Assembly: GCA_001949185.1 (NCBI GenBank)
Contig: BDGG01000003.1
Span: 2,587,158 to 2,651,157, forward strand
DNA length: 64,000 nucleotides
Origin: Ramazzottius varieornatus
Taxonomy: Eukaryota > Animalia > Tardigrada
Reading direction: 5' to 3'
The notes beneath the pieces were generated by a model. It saw only the letters and a program-made list of their open reading frames with translations. It was not told the DNA's origin and made no database searches. Both the position numbers and the translations under genes were made by a program. This document shows positions 13,701 to 18,691 of this stretch, piece by piece. Every line of letters begins with the position of its first letter. Position 1 is the first letter of the stretch.

Positions 13701-14229
13701 GTACACCGGAACTGTCGCAGCACCGTAGTAGTTGGTGGCGCGGTAGTTGAACATGAAGGTCCCAGACTGCCAACTACAGTAAGACGGAGGAGCATCAGAG
13801 CGTATCAAAGAACGAACTTGAAAGATAAGATTCCACATACTCCGCCAAGTTAAGTTGTCCCGATCGTGGATTCACCGCCATGTTGTACGAGCCATCGGTG
13901 TCGTTGTCTATGGAATAGACGATACCACCACCGGCTGGATTGTTGGCCGTTACTAATGCGATGAAGTTGCCGGAAGCACATCGCGACAACGTGAAATTGT
14001 AGGCTGACTGCTCGAACGTGGGAGAGAACTCGGTGAACGGGTTGTACGGGGAAGCGATTGGACGTCTTCGAAACTGACCCAAGACAACCTGCAAAGGTAA
14101 TGACCATCAATCACACATCCTCGCAGTACTCGTATGGAAAGTGAAAAGAGGACCAGTGGTGCTTACCGCCAAGCACAAAGCCAGGAGGAAGATAAAGACT
14201 ATGTAGAAGTGGTTCCTTCCATTTGCCAT
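10704..14229 (-). CDS. Secreted protein with ~6 Cys-bracketed cadherin-like repeats and CX4C linkers (~713-726 aa); cluster gene 5
   Basis: Exons 14229-14167, 14088-13841, 13773-13487 (or 13448), 12721-12428, 11953-10704, in phase. Signal peptide MANGRNHFYIVFIFLLALCLA. Repeats such as FSQSPYTFTPTTCGVNASIGSV...FYINPVTGNI. Motifs VCYNNFCY, ICFGGNCY, TCLYDNCN. No TM segment. Confidence 0.78.
12023..12215. repeat. Tandem array (74-bp period, ~3 units) of the 45-bp AGTGGCGCAC palindromic element in an intron
   Basis: Units at 12023-12067, 12097-12141 and a degenerate unit at 12171-12215. Confidence 0.75.
12813..13040. mobile_element. ~228-bp MITE-like element with ~50-bp inverted termini (copy A, intron of cluster gene 5)
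   Basis: Left arm tggagtctgggcaaagttcctcagaagtctggggtcacggcgtagaggca pairs with right arm tgcctctacgctatgaccccagacttttgaggaaccttgcccacagccca. A diverged reverse-complement copy lies at 29041-29266. Confidence 0.75.
13133..13399. mobile_element. Tc1/mariner/pogo-type MITE (TA TSD)
   Basis: TA|CAGTCCGGTCGCTCGA ... TCGAGCGACCGGACTG|TA perfect terminal inverted repeats. Confidence 0.85.
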
Positions 14230-14704
14230 GATGACCGACGGACGACGAGAAACGCTCGGAAACCAGGAAGTGACTGCGCTGTAGAGTGTCATCAGTGCGA
14301 CAAGTACCCTACAGAAAGCAGAAACCTTCTGTACGGGCAAGAAAACAGTGAGCCCGTCAAAACATTACTTTGATTTTGGATGCTTTCACAAGCTTCGGTT
14401 GCTCGTTCGTGGTCCGAAAGCTTGAATAAACAATGACTGACCACATGTATTATACCGATGAAAGTAAGTCTTCGAAGCAAACTTTTGTAGATATATTATT
14501 CTTAGCTGCGCTTGCGATCTAGACAAAATACAATACTTAGAAGTAAAAGACATCACCATTGAAGAATGAGCGAATAATCCTAATTCAACAACAAAATTCG
14601 GGAAGACGGATGTCGATCACATTTAGGCAAAAAGCCATCACAATAAAGGGACTGAAATTCAGATATTAGCAGGAAAATCGTACCCGCTATGGTTCCACAA
14701 AATT

Positions 14705-17341
14705 CTAAGCGAAGAATACTGCCACTCTTTGTCCAATAGGTTCAAGACACGCCGGGCAATCGGTACAAGCACGAGCACAGGCCACACAAGCAACGACGTG
14801 ACCACACGGGGAGAAGTGCGTCCCACGGTCACGGATGCGACAGACCACGCAGTTGCGAAGGATCTCAATTTCGCGGTTCTCCCTGCTCAAGATTCTGATT
14901 TCTTCTGCAAACATTTAATTGGTTAATACTACGGCATCAAAAGAAGGTAAACGGCAAAGCCAGTGGGACACTAACCATGCACTTCTGTTTTGAAATCATC
15001 ATCCCGTGGCGGAGGAATAGCCCTGCGATCAAAAAATATGCATAACGTGACCATTCTGTTAGGAATAGGCCGGAGAAGATCAGGAAAATGATACAAGGTG
15101 GAAATAGAAGTCGCAAAGACACTGCTTTGGAACAATCCAGTCAACTTCATGAGCTTACATACAAACAGCCAGTAGTATACTATGAGCCGCCAGTATGCAG
15201 GTAAGTGAAATCGGGTTATCTCTGCTCGGCAGATATTTCTTACCGGTCGTTTGCGGATGCGACCCGGAAGAACTTATTCGCAGCGGCCTGACGACAGTAC
15301 GGGCACGTCGCTTGACTCTGTCCGCAACCAACACAGCAACACAGATGGCCACACGGATAGAAGCCCAACGTTGAGTCGGCGGAGAAGCACACCTTGCACT
15401 GGAAGAAGTCGCGCAAATCTTGGTTTTCTCTTCGCAGCTTCCTCAACTTCGTTTCTGTAAAGCCTTCGCATTTGAGAATCACTTCCAGATTCAATTGGTC
15501 CTCTGGTACGTACCATTTGACTCTACTGGACTGAGCGGCTGTGCAAGAATAGCCGCTGGCTTTTTGGGCCTTCAAATAAAACATATCAGTTCTAAGAGTC
15601 GGTAAATTGGTGGAAATGGCAGATACTCACTTGTCGTTGTCTTTCTTCGTCTCCATCGTCAGGACTTTCTCGATCAGGTCTTGGAACGACTCAAAGCTAC
15701 CGTTTAAGGCGAAAGCCTCGAGAACCAACTCGTAGTCGAAGCCCATACTTTCAGCTTCCGTCATCCACGAGCCGAAGCGGTAATCGTCGGAGCTATTCTT
15801 AGGTACCGAGAATCTACAACAAGGAAATAAGTGTTTGTTCAGGCCAATCGTTGGCTCAGAAAGCTCTCACTTACACGTGTTTCCCAGCGTCGAAGTCATC
15901 TGAGTCTTGAATTGCACACAGATGCGCTAGAAAGTCTTCCAGAGTTTCGAATATTACAGGATGGTTATCGTTTCGTCTGGTCGCTTCCGGGTCTTTGTGC
16001 GCATGAGCGGCTCGGACGACAAGATTCAGCGGGAAGCCCATCTCGATAGCCGACTGACTAAACTCTTCATACTTGTCCGGTAGATCGGAAATAATCTTCT
16101 GAAAGACGTGACGTCATTCAGCGATCAATCATAGCAAACTAATGATTTCAGGTTACTCACATCCGTCGGAGTGACATTCAGTCCAGCTCCGAACGCAGTA
16201 GTCAGATTGGCCATAGCTTGCTGAGGAGTTAGTTGAGGAGGTTCCGGTCTGGGCGAACCGCAGATTACCGACATTCGGATATGCGTCAGCGGGATAACAG
16301 GAGTGGTATTCTGAGTACGATCAAGCCTGACGTTCTCAGCTATCTGTCTACCCTACAAAAGAGAAACACGTTACACAACGAGCTATTTGACAGGGAGTAT
16401 CAAATCGCGCTACTCATGCCGGAAGCCCTGTATGACTCACATTACGAGGGCTCAATCCAACGCTAAACTGCACGTTCTTATCCAGCAACTGATGCTTGAC
16501 TTGACTGTTGGTCATCCTTGGATTGACGGATGTCTGAAGTACGTAAAAAGGCTGAACAACCATCATTACGGGCGTGAATACGAGGTGAACGACATAATTC
16601 GGGCATATCGATTTTCGCACCATAATTCGGGCAAGGCAAAACGTTTGAACATTATCGTCAATGCTTGATTCATCTCTCATCGTAGGCCTGTTGATAAAAC
16701 ATAAGGCTTTTGGCATTGGACAGACCCACCTCCCTCCCAGGCCGAATTCCCGTCATCCACAACGCTTTGTCGTTCTCAAACCTATTTGAAACTCGAGAGG
16801 AGGGATTAGTCTACCTCAGGAAACAAGAAGCAGTTCATTACGCGCAGCAGAAGCTGAGAAAAAATATGCCCGAATTACGAGTGAAAACCCACTGTGCCGA
16901 AGTATGTTGTTTACCTCGTACAGCACTTCTAGGAGATGAGAAAAGACTAATCTGGACTAACCACGTGGAAGAATATCCTTCCCAGAGGTATCAAGCCATA
17001 CGGATCGTCATCCGGCGACCTAAGACAGACAGCTATTAGTCGATACATAAGCAGATACTGCTTCGTAATTCGTATTGGCAGGTGAAACTTACACGTTGAT
17101 GAATCCGTACCCTTTCGCAGAGTGGAACATCGAGACAACACCTCTGTATGCATTCGTCCCAGCGTCTGCAACAAACCACCACGGTCGTAAATATTCAGCA
17201 AGTCTGTAACTACACGACGAGTAACTCCCTTTGATTTTGCGATTCTGCTGTACTAGAGCAAAGCCGAATTACAAAGCAGCTGAAGCACTGCTTACCGTTT
17301 GCTATTGTGTTGTTAAACATCAGCGTTGGGTTGTAGGTCAT
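14705..17341 (-). CDS. Cold-shock domain - UBA - UBA - RING - RING protein (BIR-less IAP-like putative RNA-binding E3 ligase, ~487 aa)
   Basis: Ten phase-consistent exons: 17341-17296, 17165-17093, 17019-16962, 16533-16441, 16352-16161, 16098-15875, 15813-15631, 15591-15244, 15022-14976, 14904-14705 (1464 nt). CSD: YRGVVSMFHSAKGYGFINV...RIFFHVTS...VQFSV...GRQIAENV. UBA-like: AIEMGFPLNLV and AESMGFDYELV. IAP-type RINGs: CKVC..FYPCGHLCCCVGC..CPYC and CVVC..FSPCGHVVACVAC..CPAC..VFFA*. Confidence 0.8.
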
Positions 17342-18691
17342 GGTAATCGTGTAGTCTTCGACTTCGACGATGTGCTCCGAACAAGCGAGTGACGCAGCGC
17401 AGCAAGTGTCGAATCACTGTCAATTATTAAAGTTCCGCTCTCTCGGCAGCTCACATTAGCTGAAGAGGAGAATGCAAACTTGAAAACTGAGATATTTACA
17501 TACAGTAAGTAGTTTTAAGAAGGTCCAAGCAGGAAACACTAGGAAGACCGCTTCGCCGTCAACCGCAGGGATCAGACGGCTGGTAATCGGGGAGACTGAT
17601 TCCCCTCCGACTGTTCCAAGCAACGGCACAAGGGTAGACAACTAGTACTGTACTACTTACAGCAGAAGATGAGCTAACGAGGTCGTCATGCTCTTTCCGC
17701 AGCGCAGCGTCCCCTGCGACGCACCTGAGATTCAGAAGTTGTGCCGATGTTCGTCAGCCTGTTCCTTAACACCCCAATTTTCGGCAAATCTCGTTTGTGC
17801 GTGTGGAATAATACAGAAAACTCGCGGGGATCGAAACGGAAGTTGCACATGAAGAGTTCTCTGAAAACAAAAAGACTTGCCGACGAGTTAAAAGATCCGT
17901 TTGTTTACGTTTTCTGTCAGGAGTTTGCGATACGATGTATCTGCTATCGACGACTCGAGTCTAACAGCGTTCGACGGGTGATTTAGACAGCGAAATTTTA
18001 ACGAGACAGAACGGCTTTCCAAAATAAAGTACGGCCCAACTCAACGACGATAATCAATTAATTAATATTTATTCCAGTCTTCAAAACCCTCTTTGAATGT
18101 CGTTCGAGCACTAGGTCTCCTGATCCGAGAAGATGGGATTTCCGCACCCATGATCAAGTTGCCAGTTCTGGGGGTTCGTGGCAGGTCGCATGAGACAACT
18201 GCATTGGTTTCGAAACTTTCGATAAAGGCTGGAAGTTACCTGTCCATGTCTGAGACAGTCTAGCCGTTGTCTTTCTGGAATCTGGACTTTGAGCATCAGT
18301 CAGGATCTTTTAGGTCTTTGATGCAGAATCAGTCAAGAGTGCTCTGCTGATCACTGAGCACCGTCCGTGATCCTGGCTCAGCTGCGCAGTAGTCAGCTTG
18401 ATCCTTGCGTGATACAGTAGTAGTGGGGACTCCACTTCCGGTTGCTACCAAACTTCAACTAGCGACTAGCGAGAGATGTATTCTCTAGACCTCCCCCTGA
18501 AACTTGACTGCAGGAGTGTATTGACGAACATATTTCTCTTTCAGAGCGGCAGTGTTCACCGGATCGCTCATTCCTCACGGAGAAAGACTCGACGAAAGAC
18601 TCCCGTTTGGCAGGTTGTTGTGAAGCATAAACGGGATGGTGAACACACCTACATAAGCTGACTGTTTTTCCCTTTCTCCGATCTGAAGAAC

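Follow-up and report, generated by a model that had tools for sequence, protein, structure and literature searches.

Can a ubiquitination module of the kind found in the inhibitor of apoptosis proteins (IAPs) be aimed at nucleic acids by joining it to a cold-shock domain (CSD)? This question is raised by RvY_07332, a gene on the minus strand of a 64,000-nucleotide stretch of the genome of the tardigrade Ramazzottius varieornatus (GenBank assembly GCA_001949185.1, contig BDGG01000003.1, positions 2,587,158 to 2,651,157). We call this whole stretch the window and number positions from its first letter. The gene encodes a protein in which a predicted CSD is followed by two segments resembling ubiquitin-associated (UBA) domains and by two RING fingers. 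RNA-binding RING E3 ubiquitin ligases are known as a kind, Roquin, Makorin and CNOT4 among them, but the CSD-UBA-UBA-RING-RING arrangement is not, and it has so far been found only in tardigrades. We know of no nucleic-acid-reading RING ligase with a cold-shock domain, and none turned up in our searches. The sequence of RvY_07332 is public and automatically annotated, but it is unnamed and unstudied. We found no paper on it, nor on the combination of CSD, RING finger and UBA, and two tardigrade papers do not mention it.

A single expressed gene

RvY_07332 is a real, expressed, single tardigrade gene. We aligned the RNA contigs of four public runs (X1, X2, X8 and X13), from four studies, to positions 14000..18200 of the window. 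In each run, one contig covers the whole gene with the introns removed. On this genomic stretch the gene extends from 17880 to about 14481, with its coding sequence at 17341..14705. The mRNA has 11 joints, all of them CT..AC on the plus strand and hence GT..AG on the minus strand. The coding sequence is made of 11 exons and comprises 1383 nucleotides (nt), or 460 amino acids (aa), and its frame stays open across all 10 coding joints with zero stops. The introns inside the coding region measure 39-221 nt, except for intron 3, which has 428 nt. The translations of the 11 exons are found in frame, contiguous and in order in a public protein of 460 aa, "hypothetical protein RvY_07332 [Ramazzottius varieornatus]" (here P0156). 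More broadly, at least five studies (20 public runs) contain part of the 64-kb stretch, and the best-matching runs cover about one half of the words in it, the kind of share that spliced mRNA should give.

The preliminary description of this locus had placed the CSD, UBA and RING exons on one mRNA, and the single spliced contig seen in four runs out of four bears this out. In the contigs of these runs we saw no alternative joint that would put the CSD exons on one mRNA and the UBA and RING exons on another, with the caveat that contigs can lose rare forms. The exon model itself fared less well. It had ten exons and 487 aa, and eight of its nine introns are exact when compared with the RNA joints, but its exon 8 (15591..15244) was wrong. 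In the mRNA the acceptor lies at 15569 instead of 15591, and an additional intron of 59 nt (15513..15455) is removed; this candidate exon was accordingly ruled out. The RNA contigs give 11 coding exons and 460 aa, and the 27 extra residues are absent from the protein. The ten-exon model has GT..AG ends throughout and joins in phase to 1464 nt. Over 15455..15591, where the two models differ, the wrong version of exon 8 happens to be open and in phase by coincidence, and hence phase alone could not tell them apart.

Domain order and conservation

Along P0156 we predict a CSD (residues 23-99), a variable linker, a first UBA-like segment (about 160-220), a second UBA-like segment (about 238-288), a helix with RING1 (310-378), and a helix with RING2 and an aromatic tail (396-460). 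The same five domains occur in the same order in P0003, an uncharacterised protein of 471 aa from Paramacrobiotus metropolitanus that is 36% identical overall and that we treat as the ortholog. Identity between the two proteins reaches 45% in the CSD, 31% and 43% in the first and second UBA-like segments, 52% in RING1 and 37% in RING2, and falls to 6-24% in the linkers. Since the domains are conserved and the linkers are not, each domain appears to be under constraint.

The cold-shock domain

The CSD had been described as spread over four exons. This is what the transcript gives, the domain being full-length but divergent. Coding exon 2 (17093..17165, minus strand as for all features of this gene; residues 17-39) encodes strands beta1 and beta2 with the RNP1 motif KGYGFI, and by itself matches positions 2-18 of the hidden Markov model (HMM) of the Pfam CSD family with 19 bits (E 1.3e-3). 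Coding exon 3 (16962..17019; joints 17019/17093 and 16533/16962; residues 41-59) encodes a long beta2-beta3 loop and the RNP2-like motif IFFHV. The remainder lies in two further exons, both placed by RNA joints. Exon 4 (16441..16533; residues 60-90) encodes a loop and strand beta4, inside the Pfam CSD match, and exon 5 (16161..16352; residues 91-154) encodes strand beta5 (GRQIAENV) and then a T/P-rich linker that shares only 15% identity with the ortholog.

A CSD profile match was expected, and one slightly short of the family cut-off was found over the full length of the domain. Pfam PF00313 aligns residues 23-99 with HMM positions 2-64 of 66, at 26.2 bits (E 7.4e-6), which falls just below the cut-off of 27 bits; the database's precomputed Pfam list assigns PF00313 to P0156. 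The CSD of the ortholog scores 19.2 bits over HMM positions 2-24. Residues 23-98 are 33% identical to a bacterial cold-shock protein (Csp) encoded on a metagenome contig (L023; 76 columns, pairwise E 6e-9). The AlphaFold2 (AF2) model of P0156, whose overall confidence is low, predicts CSD strands at residues 22-30, 35-40, 54-59, 79-86 and 93-100, and its top Foldseek matches are nearly all CSDs, led by CRHSP-24, UNR, CspA, CspB, YB-1 and YBX2 (probability about 1, E 6e-3 to 5e-2, target template modeling (TM) scores 0.56-0.67). For the ESM Atlas model of the ortholog, PF00313 is present in all ten of the ten structural neighbours (TM 0.59-0.66). In these models, the CSD of RvY_07332 is predicted to be a five-stranded barrel of the oligonucleotide/oligosaccharide-binding (OB) fold.

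The nucleic-acid-binding motifs are largely recognizable. Against the family motifs K-G-F/Y-G-F-I and V-F-V-H-F, RNP1 reads KGYGFI in both species, and RNP2 reads IFFHV in R. varieornatus and VFFHI in the ortholog; the former aligns to IFVHY of the bacterial Csp. Residues K33, Y35 and F37 of RNP1, F56 and H58 of RNP2, and F29 are kept in both species. The protein thus resembles the single-CSD proteins (CspA/CspB, YB-1, CARHSP1/CRHSP-24, Lin28 and UNR/CSDE1) in its five-strand OB fold, its KGYGFI motif and the FFH core of RNP2. It differs from them by an insertion of 9-13 residues between RNP1 and RNP2, by the replacement of the beta1 tryptophan and by the fusion to domains of the ubiquitin system.

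In the R. varieornatus genome (55.8 Mb in 200 contigs were searched), the only other CSD locus found is a Y-box-like gene (C10:414318-414555). One CSD protein has been counted for this species (Kamilari et al. 2019, PMC6652013). A single Y-box-like locus besides RvY_07332 agrees with this count of one, which missed RvY_07332 (PMC6652013). A scan of metagenomes with a profile built from the two tardigrade species recovered bacterial cold-shock genes only (L022-L038) and no further eukaryotic relatives. These genes are 33% identical to residues 23-98, many come from gut metagenome assemblies, and they serve here as an outgroup comparison only.

Two RING fingers of the IAP type

The two C3HC4 RINGs had been assigned to the IAP type, and the evidence agrees on both. 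RING1 lies in coding exon 9 (15244..15454), which encodes a pre-RING helix (KLRKLRRENQDLRD) and then the RING itself (C328..C362, followed by Arg363). RING2 lies in coding exon 11 (14705..14904), which encodes a helix, the RING (C413..C447), the tail RVAVFFA and the stop codon TAG. They are separated by a short linker encoded by coding exon 10 (14976..15022; joints 15022/15244 and 14904/14976; residues 380-394). Exon by exon, RING1 and RING2 score 43 and 40 bits for zf-C3HC4_3 (PF13920), and the whole protein scores 67.9 bits over two stretches, above the Pfam cut-off. All eight zinc ligands are present with C3HC4 spacing in both RINGs and in both species.

The closest solved structures and the closest database relatives are both IAPs. 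With the ortholog and with the two-species profile as queries, the best solved matches of RING1 are cIAP1, cIAP2 and XIAP (E 1e-13 to 1e-10), and for RING2 the best solved matches, in each case at the extreme C terminus, are BIRC7, MDM4 and MDM2. In a comparison of this profile with an IAP profile, hhalign gives a probability of 99.6%, with RING2 and its tail lying end to end on the C-terminal IAP RING; the tail RVAVFFA is hydrophobic and aromatic, as is the IAP consensus TVRTFLS. BIR domains are present in 60 of the 105 nearest database matches of at least 150 aa. To judge from sequence comparison, the nearest relatives of the RvY_07332 RINGs are the RINGs of IAPs.

The two RINGs differ in the residues expected to contact the ubiquitin-conjugating enzyme (E2), whose roles we take to be those seen in the RNF4 and BIRC7 structures. 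RING1 retains Val330, Pro360 and Arg363, and the ortholog likewise has Val/Ile, Pro and Arg at these positions. In RING2, the position after the last cysteine is taken by Leu448, against a lysine in the ortholog. IAP-type RINGs act as dimers. A complex prediction of RING1 (308-380) with RING2 (394-460) scored 0.29 against a mark of 0.34, a value that counts neither for nor against binding.

The protein shares with the IAP ligases (cIAP1/BIRC2, cIAP2, XIAP and BIRC7) its zf-C3HC4_3 RINGs and a UBA-like bundle upstream of a RING, and its RING2 matches the ENxxL helix and the hydrophobic or aromatic tail of the IAP C terminus. Unlike the IAPs, it has two RINGs, two UBA-like segments, an N-terminal CSD and no BIR. 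At E <= 1, neither P0156 nor P0003 matched a BIR domain, while BIRs are readily detected elsewhere in the same genome; hence the product of RvY_07332 is not an IAP. The second-best RING match in this genome adjoins two BIRs (C10:1834488-1835063) and belongs to a BIR-BIR-RING locus (C10:1834488-1835918). The genome contains at least 23 BIR matches, including a cluster of BIR+RING genes (C12:885218-892625) and a further locus at C20:361643-362355, from which R. varieornatus would seem to have a sizeable IAP family. DIAP2 is a further IAP with a UBA and a C-terminal RING.

The UBA-like segments

Two UBA-like domains with MGF motifs had been proposed, and the support for them is unequal. The second segment (AESMGF...DLIEK) is encoded by coding exon 7 (15631..15813) and is modelled by AF2 as a three-helix bundle, with a mean predicted local distance difference test (pLDDT) of 75.6 and helices at positions 7-23, 27-37 and 43-59 of the exon. 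The Foldseek and VIA-align lists for this model consist mostly of UBA and CUE domains, the best Z being 6.3, for the SOUBA domain of UBAP1, with the UBA of XIAP at 4.7. The model thus supports a UBA-like fold for this segment. The first segment (AIEMGF...), encoded by coding exon 6 (15875..16098), has sub-threshold scores only, 14.6 bits for Pfam UBA_7 and 13.2 bits for UBA with the exon alone. For the whole of P0156, the Pfam UBA (PF00627 clan) score is 17.8 bits (E 3.1e-3), below the cut-off of 22.4 bits. A language-model feature search with residues 155-292 found UBA domains as the nearest clusters, with scores of 0.76-0.81, which we take as a lead only.

No sequence kinship specifically to the UBAs of IAPs was detected. 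PF21290, the IAP-type UBA, has no match in P0156, and hhalign found no match between exons 6 and 7 and the IAP profile. However, invertebrate IAPs likewise lack a Pfam UBA match, and the XIAP UBA does resemble the second segment in structure (Z 4.7). The second segment is followed by a K/P-rich linker, PKKPAAILAQPLSPVESN, encoded by coding exon 8 (15514..15569; residues 291-308), whose joints (15569/15631 and 15454/15514) are present in all four runs.

Distribution and origin

The preliminary description recognised this architecture from no named family, and none was matched among the RING hits examined here. We searched a library of 1.84 billion representative proteins with a RING query and examined the best 150 of the 2905 matches. 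About 46 of the 115 residues of this query were non-coding, having been drawn from the wrong version of exon 8, such that the RING part alone was effective. Among these best 150 matches, the CSD motif was present in a single other protein, the tardigrade ortholog P0003, which is also the only one with the same architecture. Searches with regions 1-330 and 250-395 of P0003 returned nothing beyond P0003 itself and cIAP1, and RvY_07332 was recovered only by a profile that included the window exons as well as P0003. When all exons were aligned to P0003 with MAFFT, the short ones came out scattered, and this alignment did not enter the structure prediction. Two unnamed fragments, P0004 and P0005, form a clade with RING1, with a value of 98 in the Shimodaira-Hasegawa-like approximate likelihood ratio test (SH-aLRT), and may be further orthologs.

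A second set of proteins bears on the origin of the double RING. In BIR-BIR-RING-RING proteins (P0154/P0043, and the fragments P0012 and P0033), the RING1-linker-RING2 module is colinear with that of RvY_07332, at 28% identity over 149 residues (pairwise E 3e-16), and the second RING lacks a basic residue after its last cysteine, which is the same asymmetry as in RvY_07332. A tree with weak support (SH-aLRT 85-89) places the RING2 of RvY_07332 with the second RINGs of these proteins. These proteins carry BIRs and no CSD, unlike RvY_07332. The presence of a colinear module in BIR proteins suggests that the double RING may predate the fusion to the CSD, a point that so small a tree (59 columns, with most forks unresolved) cannot settle. 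It is plausible, judging from these comparisons, that the CSD may have replaced the BIRs.

Proposed function

What could such a protein do? On balance, we lean towards RvY_07332 being a lineage-restricted RING E3 ligase that is guided to nucleic acid by its CSD, with RING1 as the active RING and RING2 as its dimer partner. The CSD, given its retained RNP residues, is predicted to bind single-stranded RNA or DNA (ssRNA or ssDNA), and could bring the ligase to targets in ribonucleoproteins or bound to ssDNA. The UBA-like bundles may bind ubiquitin or ubiquitin chains, as in IAPs. RING1 would recruit the charged E2, and RING2 would be the partner RING of the dimer, either within one chain or between chains. 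We favour this division of labour because RING1 keeps the E2-contact residues and the arginine, and RING2 has Leu448 and the aromatic tail.

A functional parallel may be MEX3 (KH-RING), in which a domain binding single-stranded nucleic acid is likewise joined to a C-terminal RING in one chain. The MEX3C RING matches RvY_07332 weakly in sequence (E about 1e-3), and the RvY_07332 RINGs are nearer to those of IAPs than to those of MEX3. Compared with the RNA-binding RING ligases in general, the module predicted to bind RNA is a CSD, not a KH, ROQ, CCCH or RRM domain. RING ligases that read nucleic acids, such as MEX3, Roquin and the Makorins, tie the fate of RNA to ubiquitination. If our reading is true, RvY_07332 would show, as an experiment of nature, how an IAP-type ubiquitination module can be re-aimed, and this in an animal group that is studied for its stress tolerance. 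Structural biologists build fused RING-RING constructs by hand, and the protein may be a version of these that arose naturally. Its practical value is modest for now, as binding and activity are only predicted.

These proposals should be interpreted with caution, since several observations weigh against them. The score of the CSD lies just under the Pfam gathering cut-off. The tryptophan of strand beta1 is replaced by Met28 (serine in the ortholog) and the last aromatic residue of RNP2 by Val59 (isoleucine in the ortholog), and with their loss the affinity or the ligand of the CSD may differ. The evidence for the first UBA-like segment consists of an MGF motif and sub-threshold Pfam scores alone, and Z values of 4-6 for a helical bundle are modest and can reflect a common arrangement. 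The full-length AF2 model of P0156 is poor (pLDDT 44.6), and no packing of one RING against the other was read from it. Finally, the full architecture has been seen in two eutardigrade species only, and no Hypsibius ortholog was recovered by a word-indexed search, which is weak at such distance.

The substitutions in the CSD lead to the best of the alternatives, which is nevertheless unlikely: that RvY_07332 is an active IAP-derived E3 ligase whose CSD no longer binds nucleic acid and serves as a structural OB fold or in protein interaction, with targeting based on protein contacts. The loss of two canonical contacts (Trp->Met28 and Phe->Val59), the sub-threshold Pfam score and the 9-13-residue insertion between RNP1 and RNP2 would all fit such a change. 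However, RNP1 fits its motif perfectly, and neither species has lost F56 or H58. The CSDs of CARHSP1 and Lin28 share these substitutions or have a loop of similar length, yet bind nucleic acid, and CRHSP-24 is among the top structural matches. We thus still prefer a CSD that binds nucleic acid.

The asymmetry of the RINGs allows another explanation, which we find a little less credible still: that the protein is an adaptor or regulator binding ubiquitin and nucleic acid and is itself only slightly active as a ligase. By RING heterodimerisation it could, for instance, serve as a decoy for the true IAPs or as their partner. RING2 lacks a basic residue after its last cysteine in R. varieornatus, IAP-type RINGs dimerise, and the genome has several IAP genes. 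Against this, both RINGs keep their eight zinc ligands in both species, and RING1, the best-conserved domain of the protein (52%), keeps the Val/Ile, Pro and Arg that contact the E2 loaded with ubiquitin. A ligase with an active RING1 therefore remains our preferred reading. The merger of a small CSD gene with a UBA-RING gene in the gene model, or the chaining of two transcripts in a contig, is largely refuted and very improbable. Logan contigs can span two genes, and a boundary could be concealed in the 428-nt intron 3 or in the poorly conserved linker. However, the frame is continuous over 10 coding joints, the same single contig recurs in four studies, the domains follow each other in this order in one chain of the Paramacrobiotus protein, which was annotated independently, and the length of intron 3 is due solely to an inserted repeat.

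One could go further and imagine a tardigrade-restricted ligase, aimed by its CSD at ssRNA or ssDNA, that works as a single-chain RING dimer in which the E2~ubiquitin is bound by RING1 and primed by the tail of RING2. The targets of such a ligase could be proteins sitting on RNA that is damaged or stalled, or on ssDNA, possibly in response to desiccation or radiation. We regard this extended scenario as speculative and improbable.

Transcript ends and the repeat in intron 3

The transcript begins with a 5' non-coding exon (17661..17880), seen as contig pieces 17661..17879, 17661..17881 and 17661..17868 in X1, X2 and X13, respectively, and with its joint (17459/17661) present in all four runs. 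This joint also defines an intron in the 5' untranslated region (UTR) at 17660..17460. The preliminary description gave coordinates that did not include this exon and intron. The exon with the start codon (17296..17459; joints 17459/17661 and 17165/17296) has its ATG at 17341..17339, and its coding part (17341..17296) provides residues 1-15 of P0156 and one further base. The ATG at 17341 is taken as the start because an in-frame stop lies upstream of it (17416..17414). Other ATGs precede the coding sequence at 17850, 17689 and 17456, the last of them directly before a stop. At its 5' end, at 17868, the X13 contig carries 24 extra letters, the reverse complement of which resembles what we take to be a SMART template-switch oligo. 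This fits a genuine cDNA 5' end at about 17868-17881.

At the other end, the 3' UTR has a short form (14481..14704), represented by X8 and X13, whose contigs stop at 14483 and 14480, respectively. There is also a second, longer 3' end: the contigs of X1 and X2 reach 14000 (or beyond) and 14022, respectively. The sequence AATAAT occurs at 14500, near the short end. An Rfam scan of 14000..18200 revealed no RNA family.

Intron 3 (16534..16961) holds a dispersed repeat resembling a miniature inverted-repeat transposable element (MITE). The repeat is about 320 bp long (approximately 16579..16898), bears terminal inverted repeats some 55 nt in length, and accounts for the 428-nt length of the intron. 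It has at least 40 scored copies (218 candidates) genome-wide, at 87-94% identity, and the RNA contigs that lie over it have high depth and loose ends.

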